From: Thalia democratica
Taxonomy: Eukaryota
Length of the DNA: 64,000 bases
Assembly: GCA_965202585.1 (NCBI GenBank)
Contig: OZ241834.1
Span: 29,822,001-29,886,000, forward strand
Direction: 5' to 3'
The notes below the pieces were generated by a model. It made no database searches, had not been told where the DNA came from, and worked only from the letters and a program-made list of their open reading frames with translations. The position numbers were made by a program, and so were the translations under genes. Positions 6,401 to 54,100 of this stretch are shown here, piece after piece (position 1 is the first letter of the stretch; every line of letters starts with the position of its first letter).

Positions 6401-7812
6401 CGAACTCAGTGACGAAGATATTAATCTACTCTTATATACTAAAAAGAAGAAAATTATGGTGTAATTGTTATTTTTGGTATATGGAATTTGTTGATGACTA
6501 TTAAAAACAGATTTTAAAACAATTCTGACACAAAATTCACATTATATTGGAATAAGTCAACAAAAAACTTTTCCTTAACCTCCTAACGGTTTTCTTCTTT
6601 TGTAAACTTTCTCAATGAGCTAGTTTTGAAGTCTGACAAATAGTTTTATTTGCAAAGTGGTTCATTTATTTCAAAGTTTGGATACACATGATAAGTTTTA
6701 TTGATCTGAAATATCTTCAGTATTTTGGTTTGATCTTACTAAAAGTTAAACTTTTTTAGACTTATCTATAAAAAATATTATATAGATTCTAAGCAGGTTA
6801 TAGCTGATTAAAATTTATACTACTAGTAATTGTTGATTTATTTTTGCTTATCAATGATTAAACATGATACGTTAAGTGTAAAACTAAAAAATAAAACACT
6901 GATTTCTTACTTAGTCAATTATTGAAAAATAACTGAATGATTTTAATTGAAAAAGTATATACTGTCAAAATGAGTATATAACTTAAATACAACACTTTAT
7001 CTAATATCAAAAACAAAAAGGACTTTTTTCTAAACAATACTAATTTTTCTTATTAGTTAAAATTACGTTAAATATGTTTTATACATTTCAGTATTTAGTT
7101 CTTTTAACATTCAGTTTTTATTGCAGTAAATATTTTATACTTTATTTATAACACTTTATGTTTCGCAGTGTCTTTAATTTTTTTATTAGTTATTTTTTAC
7201 AAGATTCTTCCTAACTTGTTACTTCATTACATTTTCATACAAATATGCATACAAACGCAGTTTTAAGCGTTTGTTAAAATATGTCATAAATTTAACTTAA
7301 CAGTTATAGTAAATAACGGCATTAAAAGTTTAAAATTTTAGCAAAATTATAAACAGTTTTCGTTTTTTGTTGTTTTTATTTAAGTTTTATTATTACACTA
7401 TTAAAGGCGACCAAAAGTTAAAATATAAAACAAAACTAAAAATTTGAAAACAACAAAAAAAACTATTTGCAATAACCTAAGTTTTTATGTAGTTTTTAAA
7501 ACTACTAATGTAAACGCTCTGTAAAACCAAAACTTTTTTTTTCGCCATAACTATAATACCAAAGTGGTAACAAAACTTACAGTCAGTTACTTTTTCATAT
7601 TAAGTAATTGTTTGCTTAAAATTTTTTTAAATTCTTTTACATAAAAGTAAATAGTTTCCAGTAAAATAGTTCAATACAAAAAAATTCACAAAATTACATT
7701 TAAAACTTCGACTTCAAGCTTAATATTTAACAAATTTTATCAGTAAGAACAGTAGAAAAATATTAGAAAATTTTTAATAAAACTTTTAGTTTTATTGTAA
7801 AAGTAATTATCA

Positions 7813-33500: not shown

Positions 33501-33816
33501 TGTTTTTAGAAACAAAATTTATGTATTTTAATTTTGTATTTTAACAGTAGTTCTTTTTAAAAACATAATAGGTATAGTAAAAAGATTATTATAATTTACT
33601 TTTTTTGAATAATTTAAGCATATTCCCTATATAACAAAAAATTAATACACTTAGTTTTGACTATATTTTATAAGTTTTAGCAAAAATCTCAGGTAGCATA
33701 AAGTTTTACAAACAGTGCTGTTCTAGTTTTTATTGTTAATCATATAGTTTTAAACAACACAAAATACTTTAACTTTAAAACAGGATTCTAATATTTCTAA
33801 TTTTCATCACACATGG

Positions 33817-34671
33817 ATGGATATGTGGAATTGCTCTGAATCAGACGACGACATTTCTCGCCCCTCAAGCGCCGAAACGGATGAGTATCGCGAAAATTTG
33901 CCCGACGTCTGGAAAAGCGTCTCGCACGCGTCCGGCATGATACTGTAGGTGCACGAAGCGAATAAAGTTGCCACTTTGTCGCGCCCGTACTCTTACCACA
34001 GCTCGGCACGCTCGGAAGGAATTCCGTCGGCACGCTCGGAAGATATGCGGCGGCCAGCTAGGCGAAAGTCTAAACCATCAACGAGTTGCCGACGATCGTA
34101 GGCTCGAGCGAGCCCGAAGAAATGACACATGGTGACAAAAGCTGCTCTCCGCTAAACTTCACTGATGACGGTTCAACGGCTCCGCGCGGTGAACCCGAGG
34201 CTGACGACATTCCTCCAAAACGTTTCGCTCCGGAAACATCGAGCGTTGAAGTGTCGACAGTGCTGGGTTCTAGTTTGAACGAGCTTAATAAAATGTCATC
34301 TGATGACGACATTTCAAACGAGTTTAATTTCACCGGTGACGTTATTTGCTGATACCGCGGCTGGTGGCAGCTCGTCAACAGAAACTGGTCCAGTTGAAGT
34401 GTCAAATGGGAGAAACGCAATCCAACTGGAAAAAAATGGCAGAGGCTTTCCGCTTTACATCAAACACCGAGATTTTCGTGTCGAGACTGCGACGGAGCCG
34501 GAAACGAGGCGGAACCGTCGGAATAGAAATGTCACGGGAATTGTTGAAAGACGCGGTAATGACGACGTTCCAAAACGGCCGTCAAAGAGAGGCGGCAAAC
34601 CGGGCGAAGAAGCTTTTGATGGGGAACAAAAGCAACGGAAGTTCGGCTTCGAATGTCAAAATGGAAAGTAA
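33817..34671 (+). pseudogene. GC/CpG-rich broken single-exon ORF for a low-complexity acidic/basic protein
   Basis: ATG at 33817 (MDMWNCSESDDDISRPSS...), one TAG, then two frame changes link the track ORFs 34086-34352 and 34303-34671. Recurrent gacgacatt/DDI motifs and a 24-nt tandem duplication near 34003-34042. No recognisable domain. Confidence 0.4.
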
Positions 34672-35190
34672 GAACCAAGCCGCATTAGAAAACTGTGAAA
34701 ATTCTCCTGCCCGGTTTTGATGTGGTTTGTTAAAACGCTTTTGCGCTTGATGGGGAATAACTCAATATAATTAATTTGTGTTCATTTGTTTAAAAAAATA
34801 TTGCTTAAAAGTTATATTGTGGAAGCTTTGTTGTTCATATTTTTTACAAGGGACGCGTGTAAAAGTTTGTTGCGTTTTTTAGCTGACATTTTAACTTTCT
34901 CTTAGAAATTAAGTGTAGGAAAATGTTTAATACTTTTTTTTCTTTTTAGTTGTAGCGCTGCTATTTAAAACTTTTACAAATTTTGTATGTTGGGCTTACT
35001 TGCTAGGCTTTAAGGAATGTTTGTATTGTTTGCTTCTTAATTTAGTATGAATAAACACAGATGTAGATACTAACAAATAAGCTTAAACCTAACTAATCCG
35101 AATTAAAAACGAGATAAGTATAAAATATGAGTTATTTGTGATAAGGTTTTTGTTTAATGATTAATTTTCTGTGTTACTAATATATACTAA

Positions 35191-35717
35191 CAAAGGCGTC
35201 GCGTGGGGTGTTGCACTGCCGCAATTGCACCACCTTAAAATTTTTAAAGAAAAAATTAAGTATTTATAACGTTTTAGAAATTTTTTAGAACAAAAACTCT
35301 TTTAAAACTCCAATTTAGACAACGACCATTTTGCTCACTTCACTGCCGCAAACTCTTAGCTTGCGGTAAGTAAGCAAAGTTGAAAATTCCCTGAAACAGT
35401 ACAGGTTTATGTATCATTCACAGGTTATTGTATACAAAAAATGAAAACAAAGCTAAGCAGAGCAGAGGTAACTCGAGTAGACGCAACACAAGCAGAGGCG
35501 ATTCGAGCAAAAGAAACTCGTGTAGAGGCAACTCGAGTAGAAGCAACACAAGCAGAGGAGATTCGAGCAGAAGCAACTCGAAGAAAGGCAACTCGAGCAG
35601 AGGCAACTCGAGGAGAAGCAACACATGCAGAGGCGATTCGAGCACCGGCAAATCGAGCACCGGCAACTCGATTTTTTTTTCTGCACTACCTAGGAAAAAT
35701 ACCACGCGACGCCACTG
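35191..35717 (+). mobile_element. Complete 527-bp non-autonomous hAT-like element with an internal 15-nt minisatellite
   Basis: 16-bp TIRs caaaggcgtcgcgtgg / ccacgcgacgccactg (2 mismatches). 8-bp TSD tatactaa at 35183-35190 and 35718-35725. Internal (gcaactcgagcagag)n at ~35460-35670. Absent from the equivalent point of the right arm. Confidence 0.9.
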
Positions 35718-38138
35718 TATACTAATACTACTAACATTAAAGTCTTTTAAACCAAAATCAGTTAGAATTTCTCCAAGGAAATTTATTTATATATTTCAGT
35801 TTTAAAATAGTTTTTTAAACCTAAACAAGCTTTTCGTAATTTTATCAAACGTAAACTAAAGATCTGCACTGCTTAACAAACAAGTCAATTTTCTCTTAAC
35901 ATGTATTTTTGACTTATGAAGCGTTTTACATCTTATATACTCTACTAAGTTGTAATACTCTTTTCAACAAGGTTATTGTTGATAAAATAATATTTTAATG
36001 TGCGCTTTTTTTTTCAATTTTTACAAAAATAATATTTTAGTCATCAGAAAACAAAAATGAAGCTGAAACGTGCAATAGTAATATTGTTTGATAAAAGGTT
36101 ACAGAAATAAAACGAAGAAAAATAAAAGTCTTTAAAGAATTACAGTTGTAGTAAATAAGTAAAACATTAAAACATTTATCAAAAATCTTGAGTTTTTGTT
36201 ATTTTGAATGTTTTTAGACCAAGTCGTCAGTATATCAATTTAATTGCTTTATATGTTTACAAGCTCTTCTTAAAAGCAAATAGAGAACCTTCTTAAAATT
36301 CAACAAGCTCATATTAATAAAACAAACACGAACTGCCAAGTAGTGTTTACTGAAAAAAGTTATCAATTACGCTTAACGATTTTAATAGTTTGCTTCTCTA
36401 AAATTAGGTTTATGTTTTTCGTTCACAGCTAACATATATAATGTTTGTTTAAACAGATGACAGTTTATTTAAGTGTCAATAAGAAGCAACCTTTAGTCTT
36501 GAAATTAGAAATGTAGTTGTTTGCTAAAGAAAAAGTAGCGGCTTACTCTTTGGTGCTTCAAATAGATGTTTTACAAAGATTGTTTTATAACATGTACCAC
36601 TATAAGTTTATTATTTTTCTAAAAAAATGTTGAGGTTCTTTGTTTGTTTTAGTTGGAAAATATATTAGTTGTGTGGTTTACTACAGTTTATAAATTAGCG
36701 CAAAATTTTTTTTTTATTTCAGAAAAAAAATAGTTACAAAAAGACGAGCTTAAAAATGGTCCCTAAGAAAAAGTTACACAAAAAACAGAACTAAATTAAT
36801 AAAATGTTCGTTTTCACCAGAACAGTAGTTAAAAATTTTTACAGAAGTTCACTTCCTTACTTTTTTACTCTTAGGTTTTTACTTTATATTAAAAAGAATC
36901 TTATGCGTTTTCACAGTATTGTTTTATAACATTATACTCAAGCTTTATAATAAAATAATTCTATGCTTTAAAAATGTATATGTCCTACTTAAAATTTTCC
37001 ATAAAAATGTTTTTAAGGGTATTTACGTTTATATATATATACGTTTATATAAAGTATAGTTTTTTATATGTTCCTAAAATGTTAACAATTTTGTATGTGT
37101 GTTTAGTTTCAAGATAAAGTTAAAACCTGAGAAAAAATTGTTAACAGTAAAATTTTATATTTTAGGTTTGTTAGTTTTTTCTTTGAATAAAAACCAACAA
37201 AAACAATTTGACAATAAATTTTTTTCAAGTAATTATCTTAAAGTTAAGAATAAATACAAAGTAACGCTCTTGTACTATGATTAAGCGGTTCTAAAAGTAG
37301 TTAAGTTATTTTACAACTTTTAGTTTAAAGATATGCAAGCTTAGAAGTAATAAGTTTTTGATTTTATAACAGCTTTAGAATTTTGATTGCTCGTTTATAT
37401 TTTTTAGTTTGTTTAGTTAGATGCTTTAAGTAAAATAGATAGAAATAACTATTTAAATGTAAACATTATATTTTTTAGTCATTATCTTTATTTTCTTATC
37501 CAAAATAATATAACTTAGTGTATAGTAATTAAGTACAATTTTACAATACTATTTTAAAACTAAATTTTATGCTTTTATACATTTCAGCTTTAAATGTTAT
37601 ACAAAACTACATTACTAAACAACTTTTTATCGTTACAACCTAAATTTTATCGTATTTTTAATTCTCTGTTATTTTTCTCTCTAGTAACTCTTAATTTTTT
37701 TTATTACAATTATACTTACAAAACAGCTTTAACGTTCCAAAACCTAAAAGATTTTATTTGACATATTATTAACTGCATAAAATTAATACAAGTTAAAAAT
37801 TAAATAATTATTGTTTAAATCATGTTGTAGTCAACCATATATAATTGTTATATTTATGATAGAGTAAAGTTTCATAGCTTAGCTATGTATAAAAATGTTG
37901 ACTCAAAATGTTAAGAAAAAGAACTAAAAGTTTAATTTATAAAGCATTTAGTATAAGCTTACTTTAAATATAAACAATATGAATACAAATACTGGAAGCT
38001 AAGTTTTAAGCTAAAACAAAATCCGAATAGCACATAATCATTTGCTTTATTTATTAAATCAGCGGTATTTAGTTTAATATTATAAACCTTACAGTAAAAT
38101 TTTAAACGTTTACAATTTTTGCTCTTAAGTCTTGGTAG

Positions 38139-38845
38139 ATGCGCTTGCCGAATCAACCAGTATATCGTCAGCGATCAACTTAGTAGCGCACCTTCCAAAC
38201 GGGAGTTAATTAGCAACGGTATTTTCATTCCGCACGTGACAAGACAATCAGCCGATGCGGAATCCATTTCAGACGTTGAGGAAAGTTCAAGCGATCCATC
38301 AGACACAAAAAGTTTTTTTTTTCAGATCTACAAACTAAAACGCCACTAGTTCAGCAAAGGGATTACCAAATCTACCAGTGAATAAAAAACAACCAGATAC
38401 TAACGGTACACACCAGTTGTTGTTCAACCAGTAAACAAAAAACAACCAGCTACTAATGTTCACCAACCAGGCGATTCGAAACCAGTGAATAAAATGCAAC
38501 CAGCTACTAATGTTCATCAACCAGATGATTCGAAACCATTGAATAAAAAGCAACCAGCTACTAATGTTCACCAACCAGATGATTCGAAACCAGTGAACAA
38601 AAAAACAACTACCAGCTACTAATGTTCACCAACCAGATGATTCGAAACCAGTGAACAAAAAGCAACTAGGTACTAATGTTCACCAACCAGGCTATTCGAA
38701 ACCAGTTAATGATCAGCAACCCAACGACCCTCCAAGTGAAACTAATTCCACCGGATGTTTGCGGAAATATCTTGTTACTTTCTTTAGTTTGAAAAACTTT
38801 TCAAGCTTCATCTCATCACACGATGGTTTCTGTACAAAACTTTAA
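38139..38845 (+). pseudogene. Cassette gene A, left copy: Q/P/N-rich repeat protein, disrupted
   Basis: ATG 38139, TAG at codon 15 (38181), T10 run versus T8 in the right copy, A7 frameshift at 38599-38605. Five 54-nt repeat units (38446-38719). Tail STGCLRKYLVTFFSL...CTKL*. Confidence 0.75.
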
Positions 38846-39158
38846 ATGCTCAATTGTTTATGTTTGGTGTTTTTTAATTTGTTACAGTTAATTTTTCATT
38901 ATAGGATTGTTTTGTACTAGTCTTAAAATTGAATTTAAAAGACAGTTATTATAGTTTTTAGTTAAAATTTACAAGTATACTGGTCTTCAAACAATATTAT
39001 TATTATACACTTTCTATTTCCAAACATGCTAAAATTGTCAATAGTTTTGTCATGTTCTTTTCACAAAATCTAAGTAAGACTTTCATTAAAAGTACTACAT
39101 AATTAAAAAATTATACGCATAAATAATTTTGAACAGACTTATAATAAACTTTTGAAAG

Positions 39159-39830
39159 ATGTCACTAGAAAAAGAGACACTAGGTGACTCTGCAGAGCAA
39201 CAAACTTCGTACACCAAAAGCACAACTAACCCCAGTTTCAGTGGTCAGCCACCTGGTGTACAGCAAAACTTGCCAAATCAACCAGTATATCAGCAGCAAC
39301 CAACTTTTAATGGTCCACAACCTGTTTTTTATAACTCACAGCCAACTTTTTATGGTTATCAACCAATTTTTAATGGTCCGCCGCCAGTTGTTTACCACCA
39401 ACCTTCCAACCAAGTAAGCAACAACATCAACATTTCAGTACCAATGGCAACCGAAAACGCAACCAACTCAGCTGGTGATTCCCCAAATCAACCAGTAAAT
39501 AACCAGCAACCAGCTACTAATGGTCCACAACAAGATGACTCAGTAAGAGAACAACCCGACGATTTTACAAATGATGCAAATCCCAGTGAGAGTAATCAGC
39601 CATCTGACGCACAACCTAACCTGCCAAATCAGCCAGTATACAGTCACAAACCAGCTTTAAATGGTCCACAACCAGTTGCTAACCAACAACCTTCTAACCA
39701 ATTAACCAATAACGTCGATATTTCGGTACCACCAGCCACCGGACCGACCAGCAATGGCGCCACCATCCAAGACGTGGCAGAAGATCAAGGCGCCGGATGT
39801 TTACGGGAACTTATTTGTTTTTTCCTTTAG
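39159..39830 (+). CDS. Cassette gene B, left copy: intact 223-aa Q/P/N-rich protein with a short Cys-containing hydrophobic tail; related to the LITAF N-terminal region but lacking the LITAF domain
   Basis: Uninterrupted ATG-to-TAG ORF preceded by an AG. Internally duplicated module (NLPNQPVY...NGPQP...NN.DISVP.AT) shared with the LITAF gene. Ends GAGCLRELICFFL*. An internal CAA|gtaagc at 39413 could allow alternative splicing. Confidence 0.65.
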   Translation: MSLEKETLGDSAEQQTSYTKSTTNPSFSGQPPGVQQNLPNQPVYQQQPTFNGPQPVFYNSQPTFYGYQPIFNGPPPVVYHQPSNQVSNNINISVPMATENATNSAGDSPNQPVNNQQPATNGPQQDDSVREQPDDFTNDANPSESNQPSDAQPNLPNQPVYSHKPALNGPQPVANQQPSNQLTNNVDISVPPATGPTSNGATIQDVAEDQGAGCLRELICFFL

Positions 39831-40240
39831 TTTTAAGATTTTTTACGAACTGTTTTGACTTGCCAAATAATGGCTCCAATAAGTTTAATTTAATGTCTAC
39901 TGCCTCTCAACAATCGGTGCTTTTGATTTGTTGCAGTTAGTTAAGTTTTGTGTACAAGGGTTTTATTTTGTTTTAGCTTAAAAAGACAACAATTGCAAAA
40001 CAGCTATAGTAGTTTTTATTTGACGTGGATAAGCTTTTTAGTCTCTAAAATCTAAATGACTTTTAAAATATTATACACTAAACTTTTAAATGCGTTAAAC
40101 TTGTCATTTTGATGATGTCTCGTGTTTTTTTCAATAATTAGTTTAAATTACTTTTATGAAAACAACTTTAACTATAATGCTTTTAAGTTCTATAAGTAAT
40201 CAAAAAAACTAAACAGATTTATACTAAAAGCTTTTGAAGA

Positions 40241-42067
40241 ATGTCGAATGAAAAGAAAGGTCTGCCACCAGATGGTGCTGTATCGCCGCAACCCCCAGCC
40301 TACGCCCCTGCAGCTGAAACGAAAACCCCCAGCAGTGAGAGCAGCAAATCATCTAACAATGAAAAAAGCTTGCCGAATCAACCAGTGAATCAGCAACCAG
40401 TTTTTAATGGTTCGCAACCAACTCTTTACTCGCAACCATCTTTTGTCGGTCAGCCTCCAGTTCTAAATCAGCAGCCAACTTTTGTAGGCCCACAACTAGT
40501 TCATAATGGTCATCAACCAGTTTTAAACCAGCAACCAGTTGTTGGTCCACATCCAGCTTACAATGTCCAGCAACCAGCTTTTGCCGGTCAGCCACCGGTA
40601 GCTTTCCAGCAACCAGCGAGCAACAACTTGACCAACAACATCAAGATTTCGGTGCCGATAACGACCCAAGCTCCTGACAACAGCGCCACCGGCACCAATG
40701 TGGTGGCAGACCTGCAGCGTTCGAACGCCCCGACCAACGTAGAGTGCCCCAACTGCAAACAGAACGTGGTCACGGTGGTCAATCACGTGAACAGTAAGTT
40801 TGTTGTCAATGAGAAAAAGTGGCTTCATGGTATTTTTATACTTTTAAAAGCAAGTTTTTTCGATTACGACTGGCCGACGAGTTTTTTTTTTGGTAAGAAG
40901 GAAACCTAGGTTTCGGTCTAGCGAGAGCTTGTGATGTAATAATCTAATAACGTATGATCAAAACTTCTTTTCATCAATACTTTTTTTTTCAATCTAGCGT
41001 CAAAAACTTGTTTGATTAAATAATAACTTTTATGATTTGAGGAAATTTTGACTTTTATTTGGTCACGAAACAAAAACAGAAGAAAAATGTAATAACTAAA
41101 ATAAAGTTCTAAACTTGAGGTTAAGAACTGTCAAAAAACAAATTTACTTTTTTTTCAGTACTTTGAAATTTTAGTAAATAGGGTCAAATTTTTTATGTAA
41201 CTTGATAAAAATAGCAAATACTTATTCAGATATGTTTACTAACCTTCGCTATTTTGTAACTAGTTGACAAATAAATCCTTAAAATATATAAAAAAAAGTA
41301 AATTTTATTTGTAGAGCGCACGAATGATTAGTGTGATATTTTGATTTATTTGTTTTGTATAAAATTCAAATAAAAACTATTCCTTTTCTAAAACAATCCA
41401 GTCCTAACAAGCTCAAGTTATTTGCTAAGCGCTAAATATTTACACTACAAACAATTGTGGTGATAATTTTTTTACTATTGTTTTTTAGTAAAAAGGTTTT
41501 TTTTCATATTTTTTAACAAACGTAACCACTTTTACATTATTTCTGGTGATAAACTTTTTGTAGTTTAATAATTGTACACAGGCAACTTTTTTTTTGAACA
41601 AACAACGTTTCACCTTACATTGTAGTTTTAGTTTATTTTGCTTGTAGTAATTTTTTTAGTAATTTTGTGTTTTTGTATAAACTATACGGTTATCAAATTA
41701 TCAAAATTATTTTTTTTTTTTGGCACAAACTTATCTTTTAATACATTACGAGACTTACAGGCAGCGATACCTGGATAATTATAAATATTTTTAAATTTGA
41801 CACAAACTTACTTTTTTTATAACATCATAATCGAAAACACTATCGAGTGTATTGTTTGACTTATAACAAATGCTCAGAAATTATAAAACCGGTTATTTTG
41901 CAGGCAGCACTACCTGGATAGCGTCCGGGATGATCTGCTTCTTCGGAGGATGCGCATGCTGCTTGTGTCTCATTCCTTTCTGCATAAACAGCATGAAAGA
42001 CGCGCAGCACACATGCCCTCACTGCAAGTTTCACATCGCCACCTGCCGCGACAAAACTTTTAAGTAA
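40241..42067 (+). CDS. LITAF-like: LITAF-domain protein (LITAF/CDIP1 family), 238 aa, 2 exons; intact copy
   Basis: Exons 40241-40793 (donor A|gtaagt) and 41904-42067 (acceptor ttttgcag|GC); 717 nt in frame. PPAY motif, Q/P-rich N-terminus, CPNC...hydrophobic stretch WIASGMICFFGGCACCLCLIPFC...HTCPHC: the LITAF zinc-ribbon signature. Confidence 0.92.
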
Positions 42068-42805
42068 AGTTTGTAAACTTTTCTCGAAAAATTCAACTTG
42101 TGTCAATGTTACTCCGTAAGAAAACTTTGTGTAAAATACATTTTAAAGGTAAAAAACTTTTGAATGAAGTTAATTTTTTTGTTTAAAAAAAATGCAGTTT
42201 GCGGAAATTTTGTTTCCGTTTGAAAACTTTTTTTTAAAAGAATCGTTAAAATTTTGATAGTTTTTTTTAAATTTTAGCACTTGTCTTTCAAAGGCTGCCT
42301 ATTTGATAAAAATTTAAAAGTTTTTTAATAATAAGTATTTTTGTTGACTTGAATACCTAGATATTCGTTTGAAGCCGTTTCTGTTTAAAGGTTTTCTTTA
42401 GTAACTTGTTTAACTTTATTTTGTTCCGAGTTTTTACTAAAAACTTTTTATAGAAAAGTTTTCATACTTTTGTGAAACTTTAGTGAACAAAAGCTTTTTT
42501 TTTCCACTTATGTACATAGTTTTATTTTAATGAAATAACTATTAATCCTCTTTGGTTGGACAGCGTTCAGTTTCTTTGAAATAAAATGCTTTCACTTGTT
42601 AAGTACTGAGACTTTTTTCTAGCTAAAAAAGTACAAGACTTTTTATAAATTTTTACTGCATTATTAATTAAGGTCCATAAATTTAAATTTGGAAAACTAC
42701 TAAATAAAAAGATTTTTTTTACTCCAAATATTTCACCTTTAGTAAATAATTAAAAAACTAAATTTAAAATAAGTTTGTGATTTTTTATTTGTATGTAGTC
42801 AATAC

Positions 42806-43762
42806 CAGGGGCGTCGCGTGGGGTGTTGCACTGCCACCTTAAAATTTTTTAAGAAAAATTTAGGTATCTATAACGTTTAATTTATTTTTTAGAATAAAAT
42901 CTCTTATAAAACTCCAATTTAGATAACGACTATTTTGCTCACTACACTGCCGCAAACGAACTCAAAACAGCAAAATTTCTTCAAGAAATACCGCAAAATC
43001 AATGTCTTGCGGTAAGTAAGCTAAGTTAAAAATTCCCTGAAATAGTACAGGCTTAAGTATCATTCCACAAGCTGTTGTAAAAAAAATCAAAAACAAAGCT
43101 AAGCAGAGCAGAGGCAACTCGAGCAGGGACAATGTCGAGATATTCACGCGATAAATTTATTTCAAAGCGGATGTTGTAAACTGTTTTACGCAGATTTCGT
43201 GACGTGCTTCCAGTATTGAAAAAACAAACATTTTTTATTATTAGGAGTTAATTTATTTTTAATGAATACGTAAGAAAAAAGAAGTTTTCTTTGCTTGATA
43301 TAAAATAAACAACATTTTGAAAGTTATGAACATTCGGTAGTTATTGGTGTGCTTTAAGTTAAGGTGCATTTCAAACATGTTAAATTTAAGATTCTTTCTT
43401 GATTAAGTTATAAGATACTTATTATATAATTGTATTATCATTTTTGTTTAAATGTAGTTTTAGTATAGAGTGATGTAATTGTATCTTTGGGTTGTTTAGT
43501 TTATGTAAATAAAATATAAGTCTTGTTTTGACTGTTGTACTAATCTACTTTACTTATCCCTATTACCCCTTAATAACATCTTTGTAACGGGATAACAACT
43601 CGAGCAGAGGCAACTTGAGCTGAGGCGACTCTAGCAGAAGCAACTAAAGCACCGACAACTCGAGAAGAAGCAATTAGAGCACCGACAACTCGAGCACAGG
43701 CTTCTCGGCAATTTTTTTTTTAATTTTGCACCACCTAAGAAAAATACCACGCAATGTTACTG
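42806..43762 (+). mobile_element. Second hAT-like copy at the inner end of the left arm; interrupted by an insertion, TSDs do not match
   Basis: 5' TIR caggggcgtcgcgtgg at 42806; degenerate 3' TIR ccacgcaatgttactg ending at 43762. Left flank gtcaatac versus right flank atagctag. Confidence 0.8.
43127..43595. mobile_element. 469-bp insertion within the hAT minisatellite, possibly a LINE 3' fragment
   Basis: Bounded by caactcgagcag at 43115-43126 and 43596-43607 (a TSD or simply the repeat unit). Absent from the other two hAT copies. LINE identity is a guess. Confidence 0.45.
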
Positions 43763-43849
43763 ATAGCTAGTAAACGTTTCAAAACTACGACTAAACACGC
43801 CTTTTTTTGCTGATAATTCTGAGTATACATTGCAAGTTTTAAATCATGA

Positions 43850-43955
43850 CCTCATGGTCCACCTGTGGCCCCTTTACTGCTCATGGCCTTCTAAATTTCT
43901 GTAGTTGACCCCAAGGGGGCCACTTGGCTTAGTTTTGTAAACCCTTCCCATATAC
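43850..43955. mobile_element. Probable hAT-MITE fragment in the palindrome spacer
   Basis: GC-rich ggtccacctgtggcccc...gggggccacttggc...aaaccct motifs of the kind seen in Charlie-like MITEs. Ends not defined. Confidence 0.3.
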
Positions 43956-45502
43956 CCTTAATTTATACCAAGATAGTTCAGCTTTCACGTTTTAAAAAAG
44001 CTATCATAAGTCTTAAGATGATAGTAAGGCTTTTTGATGTCGTGAGGGTCCCACTGACAAATCTTTGAGTTGAAAATAACAATCCAGTGGTTGACGCATA
44101 CACAAAACAAAAATTTGAAAAAAGTAAGTTGTTACATTTTAATTGTGTTATCAACTTTACTTGTTGTAGTATTTGTTCAGAAATGGGTAGGTCAATCCTA
44201 ATTTCTAAAATCTGATCTTGTTTTGCGGGATTTTATCAGAAACTATTAACAGCCATAGTTAGTTAAATTGATCAAAAACACAATCTTTTTTAAGATATAC
44301 AAGGTCACATTGTAAATCAAGAGCTGTCAATGATTAACTAAAGTTAAAAATGAGAAGTAAAATCTACACACTTATAGTTCAAACAAAAAGTTTCAAAACA
44401 AACTAAAAAAAACGATGTTACTAAAACTTTTTTTTCATAATAAAGTAAGCTTTTGTCCTTGCTGCAACACGCTCATCTACATTTTAAATATTACTACAAG
44501 TTCTATGTTTTAATAAATAAGTACAATTGACATAGTTGCATAAATGTTAGTAATTATAAACAAAGCTTTTCATGTTTTAACATTGACAAATAAAGTGCAA
44601 ACAATTACAACTGCTAGATTTAAGAAAGTGCTATTTATAACTGCTCTGCATAAAACATCTAAACTTGAATACTCAGACATTAAAAATATACCTTTTATAC
44701 CTTTCAAAAGGAAAATAAATATATTTTTTTGACTTTTAACAGTTACTGAAAGATTTTTTTTTTAAATAACTAAGTTTAAAGTATAACGGAATATTTTACT
44801 TGATACTCAACGCAAATTGTATGTTATCATAGCATATTTAGTAATCTAGCATAAATTGTTCAACTGTCAGTATGATTATACCACAATCCTACTAATAAAA
44901 ATTCCTCCTTAAAGTTACAACGTTTCAGTTTACATGTAACTTATTTTTAAAACTAATCTGTAGTTTTACCAGCATTGTTTAAAAGGGTATTATTTTGCAG
45001 GGGCTTGTGTGTTGCTTTAATTTGCTTCCTTAATGCTTTTAAAATTTTTGTCTAATAAAAACGGTGTTAGGTTTTTTGTTGCACAAACACGAGTCAATTT
45101 GCGTTCTAAAAGACAAAAGTTCCCGTTTAAATTTTTCTTACTCAAATTTAAACATGAACGTTAAAAAACAAAAAGCTAAAACAAGGTAATGAACTAGAAA
45201 ACCAAAAACACAATACATACAATGACTTTAGTTATTTTATTTACTTTTTTTCTTAAATATTAACATTTGCTTCCATGTTTAAACCAATGTTTTTACTGAA
45301 AAACTACTTTAAAGCTCATTTCTTTTTACTTTCCGGCTTTCGCTGCGCGTTTTCTGCCTTTTACTCGCAGCATGTTCAGGTGACAATTTTCTCTTTTTGA
45401 CCGCATTTTCCGTTTCGCACTTTCTATTAATCCGCTCGCCTGCTCCCGCCATTTCAACAGTCTTTTGGCATTCAAGAATCCAGTCGGAATAGTCGCGAGC
45501 GA

Positions 45503-45965
45503 TGCCTTTTCTTGAGTTGCTTCTTCTCGAGTTGCCTCTTCTCGAGTTGCTTCTTCTCGAATTGCTTCTTCTCAAGTTGCCTCTCCTTGAGATGCTTTTG
45601 TTCAAGTTGCCTCTGCTTGAATCGCCTGTGCTCTGCTTAGCTTTGTTTTCATTTTTTGTTTATAATAACTTGTTGAATAATACTTAAATCTGTACTGTTT
45701 CAGGGAATTTTCAACTTAGCTAACTTACCGCAAGATATTGATTTTGCGGTAATTTTAAAGAAATTATGCTGTTTTGAGAACATTTGCGGCTGTCAGCTAA
45801 GAGTTTGCGGCAGTGAAGTGAGCAAAATGGTCGTTTTCTAAATTGGAGTTTTATAAGAGATTTTCTTCTAAAAAATAACGAAAACGTAACAGATACTTAA
45901 TTTTTTCTTACAAAATTTTAAGGTGGTCCAATTGCGGCAGTGCAACACCCCACGCGACGCCCCTG
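45503..45965 (-). mobile_element. Third hAT-like copy at the inner end of the right arm; truncated in the minisatellite
   Basis: 5' TIR at 45965 on the minus strand with the same flank (gtcaatac) as the 42806 copy. No 3' TIR; joined at ~45503 to unrelated exon-like sequence. Confidence 0.85.
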
Positions 45966-46698
45966 GTATTGACTACATACAAATAAAAAAAACTTAAAGT
46001 TATTTTAAATTTAGTTTTTAAATATTTGTTAGAGTTGAAATGTGGAGTAAAAAAATTCTTTTTATTTAGTTGTTTTCCAAATTAAAGTTTATAGAACTTA
46101 ATTAAAAATGCAGTAAAAAGTTATAAAAAGTCTTGTACTTTTTTAGCTAGAAAAAAGTTTCAGTACTTAACAAGTGAAAGCATTTTATTTCAAAGAAACT
46201 GAACGCTGTCCAACCAAAGAGGATTAATAGTTATTTCATTAAAATAAAACTATGTACATAAGTGAGAAAATTACTTTTGTTCACTAAAGTTTTACAAAAG
46301 CATGAACACTTTTCTATAAAAGGTTTGTAGTAAAATCTCGGAACAAAATAAAGTTAAAAAAGTTACAAAAGAAAACCTTTAAACAGAAACGGCTTCAAAC
46401 GAATATCTAGGTATTCAAGTCAACAAAATACTTATTATTAAAAAAACTTTTAATTTTTTATCAAATAGGCAGCCTTTGAAAGACAAGTGCTAAAATTCTA
46501 AAAATAAGATCAAAAATTTAACGATTCTTTTAAATAAAAGTTTTCAAACGGAAACAACATTTCAGCAAATTGTTTTTTTTTAAACGAAAAACATAACTTT
46601 ACTTAAAATTTTTTTTCTATAAAAATGTTTTTACACAAAGTTTTCTTACGGAAATAACATAGACACAAATTTAATTTTTCGAGAAAAGTTTGTAAACT

Positions 46699-48477
46699 TT
46701 ACTTAAAAGTTTTGTCGCGGCAGGTGGCGATGTGAAACTTGCAGTGAGGGCATGTGTGCTGCGCGTCTTTCATGCTGTTTATGCAGAAAGGAATGAGACA
46801 CAAGCAGCATGCGCATCCTCCGAAGAAGCAGACCAACCCGGACGCTATCCAGGTAGTGCTGCCTGCAAAATAACCGGTTTTATAATTTCTGAGCATTTGT
46901 TATAAGTCAAACAATACACTCGATAGTGTTTTCGATTATGATGTTATAGAAAAGGTAAGTTTTTGTCAAATTTAACAATATTTAAAATTATTCAATTAGT
47001 GCTGCCTGGAAATTTTGTAATGTTTAGAAAAAATAAGTTTGTGCCAAATTAAAAAAATTATAACTTTGATATTTTAATAATCGTAGAGTTTATATGGAAA
47101 CACAAAGTTACTGAAGAAATTACTACAAATAAGTTAAATCAAAATTACAATGTATAGATAATTTTTTTTTTAAAGAAACAAGTTACCTATATACGATTAT
47201 TTATCTATAAAATTTTTATCATCAGAAATAATGTAAAAGTGGTTACGTTTGTTGAAAAATATGAAAAAAAAGCTCCCTGTGTACTAAAAAACAATTTTAA
47301 CAAATTTGTCACAACAAATTGTTTGTAGTGTAAATATTTAGCGCTTAGCAAATAACTTGAGCTTGTTAGGACTGGATTGTTTTAAAAAAGGAATAATTTT
47401 TATTTGAATTTTGTACAAAACAAATAAATCAAAATATCACACTAATCATTCGTGCGCTTTGTAAATAAAATTTACTTTTTTATATATTTTAAGAATTTTT
47501 TTCTCAAATAGTTACAAAATAGCGAAGGTAAGTAAGTATATTTGAATAAGTATTTGCTTTTTCAACCAACTTAAATAAAAACTTTGACCCTTTTTATTGA
47601 AATTTTAAAAAACTTAAATAAAAAGTAAATTTGTTTTTTGACACTTGTTAACCTCAAGTTATGAACTTTCATAGAGTTATTTACTCTTTTCTTCTGTTTT
47701 TGTTTCGTGACCAAATAAAAGTCAAAATTTTCACAAACCTTAAAAGTTATTACTTAATAAAACAAGTTTTTGACGCTAGATTGAAAAAAAAAGTATTGAT
47801 GAAAAAAACTTTTTATCACACGTTATTAGATTATTACATCACAAGCTTGAAACCTAGGTTTCGTTCTTACCAAAAAAAAACTCGTCGGCCAGTCGCAACC
47901 GAAAAAACTTGCTCTTAAAAGTATAAAAATACCATGAAGCCACTTTCTAATTGACAACAAACTCACTGTTCACGTGTTTGACCACCGTGACCACGTTCTG
48001 TTTGCAGTTGGTGCACTCTACGTTGGTGGGGGGCGTTTGAACGCTGCAGGTCTGCCGCTACGTTGGTCACGTGCGGAATAAAAATGCCGCTTTCGATTAA
48101 CTCTCGTTCGGAAGGTAAGCCACTGGCCGTGGTGTTGCTCGTTGCTGTTGGAAAGCTACCGGAGGCTGACCGACAAAAGTTGGTTGCTAGTTTAAAGCTG
48201 GTTGCTGACCATTATGAACTGGTTGTGGGCCAACAAAAGTTGGCTGCTGATTTAGAACTGGAGGCTGACCGACAAAAGATGGTTGAGAATAAAAAGTTGG
48301 TTGCGAACCATTAAAAAATGGTTGCTGATCCACTGGTTGGTTTGGCAAGTTATTTTCATTGTTAGATGATATGCTGCTCTCACTGCTGGGGGTTTTCGTT
48401 TCAGCTGCAGGGGCGTAGGCTGGGGGTATCGGCGATATAGCACCATCTAGTGGCAGACCTTTCTTTTCATTCGACAT
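46699..48477 (-). pseudogene. LITAF-like: LITAF-like, right copy; inactivated
   Basis: Exons 48477-47967 and 46862-46699 with intact splice sites. CAG>TAG at 48189-48187, a -1 indel, a second stop in the shifted frame, a +1 indel (C6) and CPNC>CTNC. Exon 2 is still open with only MI>LV changes. Confidence 0.85.
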
Positions 48478-48772
48478 TCTTCAAAACTTTTAGTATAAAT
48501 CTGTTTAGTTTTTTTGTTTACTTGTAGAACTTAAAAGCATGAATCTTTTCATAAAAGTAACTTAAACTAATTATTTAAAAAACACGTGACATCATCAAAA
48601 TGACAATTTGAAAGCATTTAAAAGTTTAGTGTATAATATTTTAAAAGTTGGTTAGGCTTTAGAGACTAACAAGCTTATCCACACTAAATAAAAACTACTA
48701 CAGCTGTTTTTCAATTGTTGTCTTTAAGATAAAACAAAATAAATCCTTATACACAAAATTTAACTAACTGCA

Positions 48773-49501
48773 TCAAATCAAAAACACCGATTGTTGATAG
48801 GCAGTAAACATTAAATTAAACATGTTTAAACCATTATTTGACAAGTCAAAATAGTTTGTAAAAATCTTAAACTGAAGGAAAAAACAAATAAGTTCCCGTA
48901 AACATCCGGCGTCTTGATCTTTTGCCACGTCTTGGATGGTGGCGCCATTGCTGGTCGATCCGGTGGCTGATGGTACCGAAATGTCGACGTTATTGGTTAA
49001 TTGGTTCAAAGGTTGTTTGTTTAAAACTGGTTGTGGACCATTTAAAGCTGGTTTGTGACTATGCACAGACTGATTTGGCAGGCTAGGTTGTGCGTCGGAT
49101 GGTTGACCACTCTCATTTGGGTTTGTTTTACATGTAGGGTCGTTGGGGTGTTCTCTTACTGAGTCATCTTGTTGTGGACCGTTAGTATATGGTTGCTGGT
49201 TATTTACTGGTTGATTTGGAGTATCATCAACTGAATTGGTTGAGTTTTCGGTCGCTATTGGTACCGAAATGTTGTTGTTGCTTACTTGGTTGGAAGGTTG
49301 CAGGTAGATAATTGGTTGCGGACTATTAAAAACTGGTTGATAACTATAAAAAATTTGTTGCTGCTGATATACTGGTTAATTTGGCAAGTTTTGCTGTACA
49401 CCAGGTGGCAGATCAATACTGGGGTTCGTTTTTCTTTTGTTGTACGACGTTCGTTGCTTTGCAGCGTCATTTGGTGTTCGGATCTCTTTTTCTCGTGACA
49501 T
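48773..49501 (-). pseudogene. Cassette gene B, right copy; single nonsense codon and lost terminal stop
   Basis: ATG 49501; CAA>TAA at 49378-49376; otherwise open. The left copy's TAG is CAG here (48874-48872), so the frame runs on to 48773. Confidence 0.8.
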
Positions 49502-49821
49502 CTTTAAAAAGTTTGGTATAAGTCTGTTTAAAATTGTTTATACGTGTAATTTTTTAATTATGAATTATTTTTAGTAAAAGTCTTGCTTACAGGTTGCGAT
49601 AAGAACATAACAAAACTATTGAAAATTTTAGCATATTTGGAAATAGAAAGTGTGTATGTAATAATGTTGTTTGAAGACAAGTATACTTGTAAATTTTAAC
49701 TCAAAACTATAATAATTATCTTTTAAATTTAATTTTAAGACTAGTACAAAACAATCATATAATGAAAAATTAACTGTAACAAATTAAAAAACACCAAACA
49801 TAAACAATTGAACACTAAAAG

Positions 49822-51136
49822 TTATGTGTCGAAACCATCGTGTGATGAGATGAAGCTTGAAAAGTTTTTCAAACTAAAGAAAGTAACAAAACATTTCCGC
49901 AAGCTTCCATTGGAATTAGTTTCACTTGGAGCGTCGTTGGGTTGCTGATTTTTCTCTGGTTTCGAATCACCTGGTTGGTGAACATTAGTAGCTGGTTGCA
50001 TTTTATTCACTGGTTTCAAATCATCTGGTTGGTGAACATTAGTAGCTGGTTGCTTTTTATTCACTGGTTTCAAATCATCTGGTTGGTGAACATTAGTAGC
50101 TGGTAGTTGTTTTTTATTCAATGGTTTCGAATCATCTGGTTGATGAACATTAGTAGCTGGTTGCATTTTATTCACTGGTTTCAAATCATCTGGTTGGTGA
50201 ACATTAGTAGCTGGTTGCTGATTTTTCTCTGGTTTCGAATCACCTGGTTGGTGAACATTAGTAGCTGGTTGCATTTTATTCACTGGTTTCAAATCATCTG
50301 GTTGGTGAACATTAGTAGCTGGTTGCTTTTTATTCACTGGTTTCAAATCATCTGGTTGGTGAACATTAGTAGCTGGTTGCTTTTTATTCACTGGTTTCAA
50401 ATCATCTGGTTGGTGAACATTAGTAGCTGGTTGCTGATTTTTCTCTGGTTTCGAATCACCTGGTTGGTGAACATTAGTAGCTGGTTGCATTTTATTCACT
50501 GGTTTCAAATCATCTGGTTGGTGAACATTAGTAGCTGGTTGCTGATTTTTCTCTGGTTTCGAATCACCTGGTTGGTGAACATTAGTAGCTGGTTGCATTT
50601 TATTCACTGGTTTCAAATCATCTGGTTGGTGAACATTAGTAGCTGGTTGCTTTTTATTCACTGGTTTCAAATCATCTGGTTGGTGAACATTAGTAGCTGG
50701 TTGCTTTTTATTCACTGGTTTCAAATCATCTGGTTGGTGAACATTAGTAGCTGGTTGCTGATTTTTCTCTGGTTTCGAATCACCTGGTTGGTGAACATTA
50801 GTAGCTGGTTGCATTTTATTCACTGGTTTCAAATCGCCTGGTTGGTGAACATTAGTAGCTGGTAGTTGTTTTTTTGTTTACTGGTTGATTTGGTGAGTCC
50901 CTTTGCTGAATTGATGGCGTTTTCGTTTGTAGATCTGAAAAAAAACTTTTCGTGTCCGATGGGTCGCTTGAACTTTCCTCAACGTCTGAAATGGATTCCG
51001 CATCGGCTGATTGTCTTGTCGCGTGCGGAATGAAAATGCCGTTGCTAATTAGCTCTCGTTTGGAAGGTGCGCACATTACATGTTCGACATTTTCAGGTCG
51101 TCGCTGTCGATATATTGGTTGATTTTGCAAGCTCAT
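49822..51136 (-). pseudogene. Cassette gene A, right copy: would encode 437 aa but for one extra A in an A7 run
   Basis: ATG 51136 (MSLQNQPIY...). The T7 run at 50869-50875 shifts the frame; downstream is the 336-aa open repeat ORF ending SNGSLRKCFVTFFSL...FDT*. Span 1315 nt = 438 codons + 1. Confidence 0.65.
49942..50863 (-). repeat. Coding-frame VNTR, 54-nt (18-aa) unit x17 with higher-order structure
   Basis: PATNVHQP(DDL/GDS)KP(VNKK/VNKM/EKNQ)Q units; 17 here versus 5 in the left arm. Confidence 0.95.
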
Positions 51137-54100
51137 CTCGCAAGACTTAAGAGCAAAAATTGTAAACGTTTAAAATTTTACTGTAAGGTTTATAATATCT
51201 AACTAAACACCGCTGATTTAATAAATAAAGCAAATAATTATGTGCTATTCGGTTTTTGTTTTAGCTTAAAACTTAGCTTCCAGTATTTGTGTTAATATTG
51301 TTTACACTAAAGTAAGCTTATACTAAATGCTTTATAAACTAAACTTTTATCTCTTTTTCTTAACATTTTGAGTCAACATTTTTATTCATAGCTAAGCTAT
51401 GAAACTTTACTCTATCATAAATATAACAACTATATATGGTTGACAACAACATAAGTTAAAAAATATTTATTAAAGTTTAATTTATATTAATTTTGTGTAG
51501 TTAAAAATATGTCAAATTAAAACTTTTAGTTTTTGGAACTTGGACGTTTTAAGCTGTTTTGTAATTTTAGGAAAGAAAATTAAGAGTTACTAGAGAAAAA
51601 ATAAGAGAATCAAAATTACGACAACATTTAATCATAAAAAGTTGTTTAGTAATGTAGTTTTGTATAACATTTAAAGCTGAGATGTAAAAATGCATGAAAT
51701 TTAGTTTTAAAATAGGAAGTATTATACAATTGTACTTATTTACTACACACTAAGTTATATTATTTTGATAAGAAATTAAAGTAATGACTAAACAATATCA
51801 TGATTACATTAAAATAACTTTGTCTATTTATTTTACTTGAAGTTTCTAAACAAAGTAAAGAATTTAAACGAGCAAGCAAAGTTCAACAATTGTTATAAAA
51901 TCTAAAACTTAGTATTTCAACGCTTGCATATCTGTAAACTATGTAAAATAACTTGATCACTTTTAGAACCGCTTAATCATAGTACGAGAGCGTTTTAGAC
52001 TTTGTATTTATTTCTAACTTTTAGATAATAACTTGAAAAAAAATCTATTGTCAAATTGTTTTTGTTGGTTTTATTTAAAATAAAACTAACAAAACTAAAA
52101 CATAAAACTTTACTGTTAAATTTTTTTTCTCAGGTTTTAACTTTATCTTAAAACTGGATACGCATACAAATTTATTAATAACTTAAGAACATATAAAAAA
52201 ACTATATATTGTATATAGTATATGAATGTAGATACACTTAAAAGCATTTTAATGGAAAATTTTAAGTAGGACGTATACATTTTTAAAGTATAGAATTATT
52301 TTATTACAAAGTTTTTGTGTAATGTTATTTAATGATACTGTGAAAACGCATAAGATTCTTTTTAATATAAAGTAAAAACCTAAGAGTAAAAAAGTAAGGA
52401 AGTGAACTTTGGTAAAAAAGTTTAACTATTGTTTTGGTGAAAACGAACATTTTATTAAGTTAGTTCTGTTTTTTGCGTAACTTTTTCTTAGGGATCATTT
52501 TTAAGCTCGCTTTTTTGTTTTTAAAGAACCACTTTATTATTTTTTAAGAATTAAAAATTAAATAATTGTTAAGCTAAAATGTAAGTTTCAGTAAAGCACA
52601 CAGCTAATATATTTTCCAACTGAAATAAACAAAGAACCTTAATATTATTTTAGAAAAATAATAAACTTATAGTGGTACATGTTATAAAACAATCTTTGTA
52701 AAACATCTTTTTGAAGCACCAAAGAGTAAGGTGCTACTTTTTCTTTAGCAAACAACTACATTTCTAATTTTAAGATTTAAATTTGCTTCTTATTGACACT
52801 TAAATAAACTGCTATTTGTTTAAACAAACATTATACTTGTTAGCTGTGAATGAAAAACATTAACCTAATTTCAGAAAAGCAAACTATTAAAATCTTTAAG
52901 CATAATTGATAACTTTTTTCAGTAAACACTACTTGGCAGTTTATGTTTGTTTTATTAATCTACGGTTATTATCTTTTTTAATTTAAAGAAAGTTCTCTAT
53001 TTACTTTTAAGAAGAGCTTACAACAGATAAAGCAAACAATTGATACATTGACAACTTGTTTTAATAAAAGATAAAATAAGAAACTTTAAACATTTATAAA
53101 ACTTTTTTTTTACGTCAACTATACTATTATAATCATTTTTAATTTCTTAATAGCTTTATTTCGGTAACCTTTTACTAAATTATATTTTTCATTGCACGTT
53201 AGAAGCTCCATTTTTATTTTAATTAAACAAAAATATTCATTTTTTGTAAAAACTAAAATATAAATCTTAAAATAAATTTCACACATAAAAATATTATTTT
53301 TCTACAATAAACTTATTGAAAGGAGTATTAAAACTTGGTAAAATGTATAAAGTATAAAGCGCTTTATAAGTCAAAATTACATATTAAGACAAAGTTATTT
53401 TGTGTGTTAAGTAAGTTAAAACATAAGCAGTACAATGGTCAGTTTACGTTTTATTAAGTTACGAGAATCATTTTTAGGTTTAAATAAACGATTGTAAAAG
53501 TTTGATATAAATTTAAAAACAATATTTGTTTTTTAAGACACTTGAACTGATTTTAATAGAAAAAAAACTTTTAATCTAAAACAATTAAGTAAAACTTTAT
53601 AACATATAACTTATCTTTTAGATTTATTTGGTTTTTATTCAAATTAAAAGTAAAGTTTAGGCATCTTTATTAGTTTACTGTTAAACATAACACTTATCTA
53701 CAACTGTATTTTGTTTTTATATGTTTTTATGAAGTAAAGAAAATGCGGCCGATGTTAACTAGGTATGAATAATTTTGATACTTTATAGTAATCTTTAATG
53801 ATAAATACCAGCTAGACGCAAAACTGAAATATCAAAGTTTTAAATGTAAACATTTTAATACTTAGCTTTTTCTTTGCAAACAATAGTTTATACATTAACT
53901 TACCATAACTTGTTTAGTCAAACAAAAATAACAAAAAAAAATTAGTCTAAGCTCGAAAACAATAAAAAAAAATTGATCATCCATTTTAAAAAAAGGCATT
54001 AAATACTGAGTCTATGAAAATAAATTTTACCCGGTTGATCTGTAGTCACTGTAACATATCCCATTCACCATATAATGATAGATTGGTTAAACTTGGATCG

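Follow-up and report, generated by a model that had tools for sequence, protein, structure and literature searches.

The window analysed here, 64,000 nucleotides of Thalia democratica DNA, contains an inverted repeat of about 19 kb in which two sets of three genes, each in the order A-B-LITAF, point toward a unique spacer. A sequence-only reading had placed this palindrome at 35030-53730, and both its gene order and its bounds were borne out, blastn and the outward reach of arm homology fitting the latter. The features discussed below are listed by window position.

35069..43132, + strand: left arm of the inverted duplication, about 8 kb; MITE-internal homology runs on to about 43763
35191..35717, + strand: complete hAT-type MITE of 527 bp with terminal inverted repeats and the 8-bp target-site duplication TATACTAA; left arm only
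38139..38845, + strand: gene A, left copy, with 6.4 repeat units; a pseudogene that carries several stops, a 17-nt deletion and further indels that break the frame
39159..39830, + strand: gene B, left copy; PQ-rich ORF of 223 aa, intact and without a LITAF domain
40241..40793, + strand: LITAF left, exon 1; PPAY motif, PQ-rich region and CPNC zinc knuckle, with a GT donor at 40794
41818..42072, no strand: arm-to-arm gene-conversion tract, 253/255 bases identical with right-arm 46694-46948
41904..42069, + strand: LITAF left, exon 2; hydrophobic segment, HTCPHC knuckle and stop codon; PF10601 at 46.1 bits
42806..43763, + strand: hAT MITE bounding the left arm on its inner side; has both termini, interior broken by about 470 bp (43126-43595)
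43764..45499, no strand: unique spacer, about 1.7 kb
45500..45965, - strand: the same hAT MITE bounding the right arm on its inner side; 5' terminus and flank identical to the left copy, 3'-truncated within a 15-nt repeat array
45607..53674, - strand: right arm of the inverted duplication, about 8 kb
46697..46862, - strand: LITAF right, exon 2; open, with 2 amino-acid differences from the left copy
47967..48477, - strand: LITAF right, exon 1; pseudogene that has acquired a TAG and an A-like patch, lost 39 nt and changed CPNC to CTNC
48773..49501, - strand: gene B, right copy; pseudogene with a nonsense codon and a lost stop
49822..51136, - strand: gene A, right copy; 94-codon N-terminal ORF and 336-codon repeat/C-terminal ORF, split by a +1 frameshift

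By blastn, 38374-43132 aligns with 50287-45607 at 85.9% including gaps and 35782-38721 with 53517-50537 at 82.9%; once the later MITE insertion at 35191-35717 is removed, arm homology reaches outward to 35069-35150 and 53674-53591. A MAFFT alignment of the arms gives a substitution identity of 88.5% (6369 matches, 826 mismatches; divergence 11.5%) and 83 indel events, which points to an old segmental duplication, neither a young palindrome nor a haplotype mis-join. In three-way alignments with a relative, outgroup-only changes far outnumber arm-only changes, so that the duplication is younger than the split from that relative. Pfam profile searches gave no match for the spacer ORF or for the GC-rich block at 33800-34720. 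We consider it likely that this locus of an AT-rich marine animal genome arose by inverted segmental duplication long ago and that redundant copies have since been lost by ordinary non-functionalisation.

The LITAF relationship proposed earlier for the cassettes was upheld. Against the zf-LITAF-like profile PF10601 (70 positions, curated cut-off 23.8), left LITAF exon 2 scores 46.1 bits over positions 26-69 and the end of exon 1 scores 17.7 bits over positions 2-22, gene B matches the LITAF exon-1 protein of the relative (P0002, E=2.9e-11), and A and B share modules of the LPNQPV type and a C-terminal tail. The PPAY motif, at residues 18-21 of left LITAF, is kept in the right copy and in P0001/P0002; PPxY in a proline-rich N-terminus is a motif for WW-domain ligases. 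The CPNC of exon 1 and the HTCPHC of exon 2 flank WIASGMICFFGGCACCLCLIPFCI, a hydrophobic segment about 22 residues long, and in this combination of CxxC, hydrophobic stretch and HxCPxC the left gene resembles the LITAF/SIMPLE/CDIP1 family (PF10601), whose biochemistry comprises zinc binding and monotopic membrane insertion (PMC5095921, PMC5142333). Unlike the layout of that family, the N-terminal region of the left gene is long and Q/P/N-rich, and the neighboring paralogues A and B keep the N-terminal type only, with a short Cys-containing hydrophobic tail. The GT..AG intron of LITAF is matched by a correctly spliced contig in the RNA-like run X4, which probably derives from the left copy; X4 contigs over exon 2 and the 3'UTR bear left-arm alleles. 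The relative has an intact two-exon LITAF orthologue (L001), and between the species the LITAF domain shows 24 synonymous versus 7 non-synonymous changes. From its motifs, the left LITAF protein is expected to be a zinc-binding monotopic endosomal membrane adaptor with PPxY.

Left B and left LITAF have open reading frames and left A is wrecked, as the sequence-only reading had stated, and the nonsense codons that it assigned to right B and right LITAF are present. In right B, a CAA codon has turned into TAA (49378-49376), and the usual stop has disappeared, TAG having become CAG at 48874-48872. In right LITAF exon 1, CAG has become TAG at 48189-48187, and three further stops lie in the out-of-frame A-like patch at about 48145-48033. 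The same TAG occurs in an independent X1 contig (record 5), which has three other differences and none at the TAG. Two ways around these stops were considered and rejected: by inspection, no GT..AG combination yields an intron that restores the frame of right LITAF exon 1, and a reassignment of TAA/TAG to glutamine was not adopted, since the intact genes use TAG or TAA as their terminal codon at sites that the relative conserves, and since the genome is that of an animal, with genes for SLC6 and ankyrin proteins.

The status of A and B themselves bears on how these losses are to be read. The two genes might be non-functional, exon-1-only relics of older tandem partial LITAF duplications that are transcribed via a retained promoter, which would leave the question of complementarity empty; we regard this as possible but rather unlikely. 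It accords with the modules shared by A, B and LITAF exon 1 and with the similar 5' leader of B and LITAF. Pfam searches found neither a LITAF domain nor any other match in B and right A, and the CxxC/HxCxxC pair was not found in 38100-40240. No homologues beyond one close relative emerged from the searches run; B and LITAF exon 1 had no matches among JGI metagenome contigs. The dN/dS of gene B is 0.75, nearly neutral, and in gene A the C-terminal tail lies outside the reading frame of the relative's copy and is shifted in both arm copies. Set against these points, all four indels between right and left B are multiples of 3, compared with 12% in non-coding DNA, and B of this locus ends in the same tail, GCLxELxCxF and then a stop codon, as A of the relative, from which two samples yielded an open 109-aa A orthologue. 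Furthermore, with the outgroup, left A has 13 lineage-specific substitutions and right A 4, and compensating -4/+1 indels keep the N-terminal frame of right A whereas that of left A is broken; these comparisons show that right A was under constraint while left A decayed. The function of B is not proven by its indels, given the dN/dS and the possibility that triplet or 21-nt repeat slippage, rather than selection, produced them. An X4 contig holds the left-B sequence, including the CAA allele.

Two other views of A and B fared less well. Were A, B and LITAF exon 1 alternative first exons to a common LITAF exon 2, A and B would need to splice onto it, but their ends have neither a usable donor nor a CxxC knuckle. 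CYSTM tail-anchored proteins (PF12734) show a weak feature-space resemblance to gene B (0.55), but there is no Pfam match and the tail of B, at 11 residues, is not long enough to cross a membrane. The locus documents a small lineage-specific set of genes that resemble the LITAF N-terminus and are without a LITAF domain.

Non-functionalisation and reciprocal gene loss are known fates of redundant copies after duplication. The sequence-only reading favored the second, with about one working copy of each gene left and the palindrome as a possible generator of diversity for an endosomal/immune gene cluster, a combination that we find improbable. The part that stands is the complementary tendency: left A has decayed faster, right A has held its N-terminal frame, and of B and LITAF only the right copies are damaged. 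The part that falls is the intact A. Right A was described as one base from intact with an expanded repeat, and rightly so, since a single extra A in the A7 run at 50875-50869 shifts an otherwise open frame. The same A7 run is, however, found gap-free in a non-reference X5 contig (record 31), and with the frameshift in both the window and this haplotype no intact A remains. The 58-nt unit that carries A7 in right A also occurs in left A. An intron that would cancel the frameshift was sought by inspection and rejected, no GT..AG combination restoring the frame; right A could yet yield protein from an internal ATG.

The recent change in repeat length of right A, which might be taken for diversification, carries little weight. 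The 54-bp array at 49940-50886 holds 17.1 copies, versus 6.4 in left A, and is built from three types of unit, all copies of a type being 100% identical. Such identity marks a very recent product of slippage or unequal exchange, and the long repeat ORF is therefore uninformative on function or selection; it had no homologue in a set of 5.8 billion proteins. X4 depth over right A is nil, a weak indication of transcript absence from the right arm, as X4 is one small RNA-like run with a depth of 2-3.

Nor does the distribution of losses call for a special explanation. The surviving copies do not lie on different arms: LITAF and B are both intact on the left, and neither arm has an unbroken A. If three losses fall independently on two arms, a 2:1 split is the commonest outcome, with a chance of 3/4, and the complementarity seen here does not exceed what chance would produce. 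The locus resembles cases of reciprocal gene loss in that each arm has lost redundant copies and exactly one B and one LITAF survive; it differs in that neither copy of A is intact as sequenced. The sequence of events that we propose under ordinary non-functionalisation would begin with the early degradation of left A. Right LITAF would have been lost through its nonsense codon together with the out-of-frame patch that an A-like donor supplied ectopically, and right B through one nonsense codon and the lost stop, with right A lost most recently through a one-base slip in its A7 run. At present the left arm would then supply a single working LITAF and a single B, and no A would be intact. The decay of most of one copy into pseudogenes is an ordinary fate after gene duplication and involves no special diversity-making device, and by itself the locus raises no new question.

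Exchange between copies does exist, as the notion of a diversity generator would have it, but in forms that lend that notion no support. The 255-bp conversion tract spans LITAF exon 2 and 86 nt of intron, between flanks that are 80-89% identical. Selection on right LITAF exon 2 was considered as its cause and set aside, because the near-identity reaches into the intron. Between paralogues, the sole exchange seen is the A-like patch in right LITAF, which destroyed the frame. Among right-arm variants in other individuals, 21 of the 37 that can be mapped to the left arm match the left base (3 more listed variants lie in the spacer); ongoing conversion was not adopted as an explanation, since still-polymorphic alleles derived from the right arm fit these numbers equally well. 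In the ampliconic palindromes of primate sex chromosomes, gene-bearing arms are kept alike by arm-to-arm gene conversion. The present locus shares with them its inverted arms, short unique spacer, genes on both sides and at least one conversion tract, but its arms are 88.5% rather than about 100% identical and most genes of one arm are pseudogenes. With arms this diverged, homogenisation is not sustained here. Exchange has been sporadic, and conversion, whether arm to arm or paralogue to paralogue, is an occasional by-product. What the locus shows is the ageing of an inverted segmental duplication within 19 kb, by the early loss of one gene copy and the late loss of others, a destructive patch, a short conversion tract and a very recent repeat expansion.

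Two more speculative roles may be mentioned, both of which we hold to be very improbable: the pseudogene arm as a source of small RNAs that tune intact LITAF and B, or recurrent exchange among A, B and LITAF that shuffles the N-terminal modules of domain-less LITAF-like adaptors. Between the arms there are 67 perfectly matching runs of 21 nt or more, one of which, in LITAF exon 2, is 139 nt long, and since the genes converge on the spacer, read-through would give a long imperfect hairpin RNA.

As to how the duplication arose, a hAT end lies at both inner junctions. Transposition of hAT (Ac) elements involving sister chromatids yields inverted duplications (bioRxiv 10.1101/2020.01.07.897926), and the locus resembles the products of alternative transposition of maize Ac/Ds (bioRxiv 10.1101/2020.01.07.897926; PMC3744419) in these hAT ends, in the inverted repeat formed by the facing 5'-terminal parts and in that neither inner copy has an ordinary pair of target-site duplications. 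No matching duplication was found around the copy at 42806-43763, and none of 8 bp around the composite insertion at the locus. The 5' termini of the inner copies abut both arms, and their flanks, GTCAATAC and ATAGCTAG, do not match. Unlike the maize case, the element is a non-autonomous MITE, one copy of which breaks off inside the 15-nt array; a template switch within that array during replication accounts for the structure just as well. We accordingly picture an ancestral block of about 8 kb with tandem A, B and two-exon LITAF and a hAT MITE at its inner end, a copy of which would have been inserted in reverse some 1.7 kb away, with its breakpoint within the 15-nt repeat array of the MITE, by either hAT alternative transposition or replication template switching. 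The complete MITE at 35191-35717 entered the left arm after the duplication.

That the palindrome is an assembly error, in which a single-copy locus was represented by two divergent haplotypes fused head to head, is scarcely credible: although inverted haplotype joins are a known error of long-read assembly and no short-read contig bridges the spacer/MITE junction near 45500, the arms are 11.5% apart with 83 indels, compared with about 1.3% between independent-run contigs and the right arm of the window, a MITE with its own target-site duplication sits in one arm only, the unique spacer separates the arms, and both arms are found in three separate samples (X1, X3, X5). In the same independent runs, 77-82% of left-arm words are present. 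The X1 and X5 contigs diverge from the window at about 45496-45504, the spacer/MITE junction, as is expected at a repeat of 1e5 copies; the MITE belongs to a very high-copy family, with a word depth of about 1e5 versus about 1e2. The earlier reading had named half depth as a sign of mis-assembly, and in the comparison of right arm with spacer none is indicated, the depth of the right arm being at least that of the spacer.

The locus is an inverted segmental duplication that is old and in which pseudogenisation is under way. Seed-and-extend repeat finding and self-BLAST recovered two long inverted alignments (38374-43132 / 50287-45607 and 35782-38721 / 53517-50537), and homology reaches outward to 35069-35150 / 53674-53591 once a hAT-type non-autonomous element (MITE) in the left arm is taken out, so the palindrome limits proposed in the sequence-only reading (35030-53730) were right. 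The palindrome is present as that reading described it, with A, B, and LITAF in both arms: the three genes of each arm are transcribed toward the spacer, with LITAF innermost. In a global alignment, the arms show 6369 matches and 826 mismatches (88.5% identity, or 11.5% substitution divergence) with 83 indel events, and identity per 300-column window ranges from 74% to 94%. The window contains no N runs.

Features of the duplicated locus
35191-35717, left arm: complete MITE of 527 bp, with terminal inverted repeats and an 8-bp target-site duplication, TATACTAA
Left A: stops directly after the start, a 17-nt deletion, and more frame-breaking indels
Left B: open, 223 codons
40241-40793, left LITAF exon 1: open; PPAY motif, long P/Q/N-rich region, CPNC knuckle
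41904-42069, left LITAF exon 2: open; hydrophobic segment and HTCPHC, after a GT..AG intron
42806-43763, left inner MITE: both termini, interrupted by ~470 bp
45500-45965, right inner MITE: cut off within the element's 15-nt repeat array at ~45500
Right LITAF exon 1: CAG>TAG at 48189-48187, a 39-nt in-frame deletion, and a replaced segment at ~48145-48033
Right LITAF exon 2: open
Right B: one frame throughout; CAA>TAA at 49378-49376; stop lost by TAG>CAG at 48874-48872
Right A: a 94-codon N-terminal ORF and a 336-codon ORF; the only break is one extra A in the A7 run at 50875-50869

We considered whether the inverted arms could be an assembly artefact rather than a true duplication. On the right arm, contigs from two independent public sequencing runs differ from the window at 17 of 1327 bases (X1) and at 30 of 2293 bases (X5), or ~1.3% in each, whereas the arms differ by 11.5%; 77-82% of the left-arm words sampled are present in these same runs, and both arms were also found in a marine metagenome, X3. 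Right-arm word depth in X1 was ~45-280, not lower than that of the unique spacer (84). Furthermore, one of the MITE insertions occurs in a single arm, and the gene lesions differ from arm to arm; both observations argue for paralogy. Short-read contigs do depart from the window sequence at ~45496-45504, the start of the high-copy MITE, and so do not bridge this junction, as expected at such a repeat.

The innermost gene of each arm is a true LITAF gene. Exon 2 matches Pfam PF10601 at 46.1 bits (cut-off 23.8), and the end of exon 1 matches positions 2-22 of the profile. A 151-nt contig from the small run X4 fuses both exons exactly at the predicted splice sites, the joint being 46861/47966 (CT..AC on the + strand). 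On a 2-kb metagenome contig of a related species (L001, ~78% DNA identity), a gene with this structure is intact; between species, the LITAF domain shows 24 synonymous versus 7 non-synonymous changes. The nonsense codons reported for right B and right LITAF are both present, and the LITAF TAG is also carried by a non-reference haplotype, since X1 record 5 spans it with three differences that fall elsewhere. The replaced segment in right exon 1 is 85-88% identical to the APSKRELISNGIFIPHVT region of gene A, is accompanied by -1 and +1 indels at its sides, and contains three stops in the LITAF frame. Exon 2 of this dead copy differs from the left copy at 2 of 166 bases; the near-identity extends over 255 bp (253/255) between flanks of 80-89%, and is a gene-conversion tract. 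Selection on right exon 2 was rejected as an explanation because the near-identity also covers 86 nt of intron. Of note, about half of the X5 depth at 48029 is without one base of a C6 run, where the A-like patch of right exon 1 has its distal frameshift; this shortfall is either a polymorphism or the result of left-copy contigs placed on the right arm.

X4 behaves like an RNA run, based on its spliced contig and on coverage limited to exons and the MITE. Words of left B and LITAF exon 1 are present in X4 in 46% of the cases. An X4 contig lying partly on right B has a loose end that matches left B exactly (39208-39245), and the left CAA allele is found in the X4 contig on B. The X4 exon 2/3'UTR contig shows seven differences from the right arm, in a stretch where seven differences, one an indel, separate the arms, and it has the left-arm base at all three differences among those listed. 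These results support the view that the left copies of B and LITAF are expressed. Right A had no depth in X4, where depths are only 2-3, which weakly suggests that it is unexpressed.

Neither Pfam nor a search for CxxC/HxCxxC knuckles found a LITAF domain in A or B. By sequence, A and B are related to the N-terminal region of LITAF, in agreement with the earlier assignment: B matches the LITAF exon-1 protein of a relative (E=2.9e-11), and there are short DNA alignments at 70-87% among A, B, and LITAF exon 1. A B-like SPNQPVNNQQPATNG module gave rise to the 54-bp repeat unit of A. B and a relative's A have in common a GCLxELxCxF tail followed by a stop (39797-39830 in B; ~560-600 on the relative's contig L003, there out of the called ORF's frame), and a one-base difference shifts this tail in both T. 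democratica A copies. The tail could serve as an anchor, either lipidated or hydrophobic; in feature space it weakly resembles CYSTM tail-anchored proteins, with a negative Pfam result.

All four indels between the B copies are multiples of three (6, 3, 42, and 3), compared with 12% of indels in the non-coding sequence of the arms. This suggests that both copies long stayed coding, bearing in mind that such lengths are also favoured by 21-nt and triplet repeats; the two copies have a dN/dS of 0.75. For A, an orthologue in a relative (P0003, 109 aa, 45% identity) is found on two short contigs from different samples. With P0003 as the outgroup, the N-terminal region of A carries 13 left-only versus 4 right-only substitutions, and the right copy is in the ancestral frame via compensating -4 and +1 indels whereas the left copy is out of frame; right A was therefore constrained while left A decayed. 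The proposal of complementary loss thus holds for the order of decay, and the left arm does combine a wrecked A with open B and LITAF, but no working A exists today. One working copy of each gene cannot be claimed, as right A is frameshifted at the A7 run, also on a non-reference haplotype, since X5 record 31 crosses the run with five substitutions and no gap. The lesion either dates back a long way or has recurred at the site most prone to slippage, because left A has the same unusual 58-nt unit with A7 (38588-38645). Right A is, as proposed, one base from intact with an expanded repeat, but the array is built from three types of unit, and within each type the copies do not differ by a single base; its expansion is therefore very recent, and the long ORF is uninformative about selection. 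The protein collection searched held no homologue of this repeat part. Since three genes each losing one random copy split 2:1 between arms 3 times in 4, the loss pattern needs no special explanation, and no role of the palindrome as a diversity generator was shown.

Both arms end inward in one shared MITE copy (~91% identity), with a common flank, GTCAATAC, beside the 5' terminus; no matching target-site duplication was found for the inner copies. In maize, sister-chromatid transposition of a hAT element (Ac) yields inverted duplications with facing 5' element ends (bioRxiv 10.1101/2020.01.07.897926). The duplication could have arisen by such hAT sister-chromatid transposition, or by a replication template switch inside the MITE repeat array, which would be expected to leave the same picture. 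The family, represented at 35191-35717, 42806-43763, and 45500-45965, is hAT-type: its termini are CAGGGGCGTCGCGTGG-like, its target-site duplication is 8 bp long, and 15-nt repeats form an array inside the element. Family word depth is ~1e5 versus ~1e2 for neighbouring single-copy DNA in two DNA-like runs, which implies a genomic copy number on the order of a thousand. X1 and X5 contigs diverge from the window at the spacer/MITE junction (45201-45504), and in each run one contig connects 45254 with 45840 through 35 other letters, which reflects either a different locus next to a MITE or structural variation in the spacer.

Two genes have exons upstream of the palindrome, both on the - strand: an SLC6 sodium:neurotransmitter symporter at 7700-16100 (PF00209; GNVWRFPYL motif at 15766-16086) and an ankyrin-repeat gene at 21500-23050. 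Just outside the left arm, a block of ~50% G+C in a 26% G+C region (33800-34720) carries, on both strands, overlapping ORFs 90-130 codons long, none with a Pfam match, and has no right-side duplicate. Short tandem or dispersed direct repeats outside the palindrome, at 14160-14700, 23263-23548, and 2894-3485, have units of 64-140 nt with identity up to 100%.
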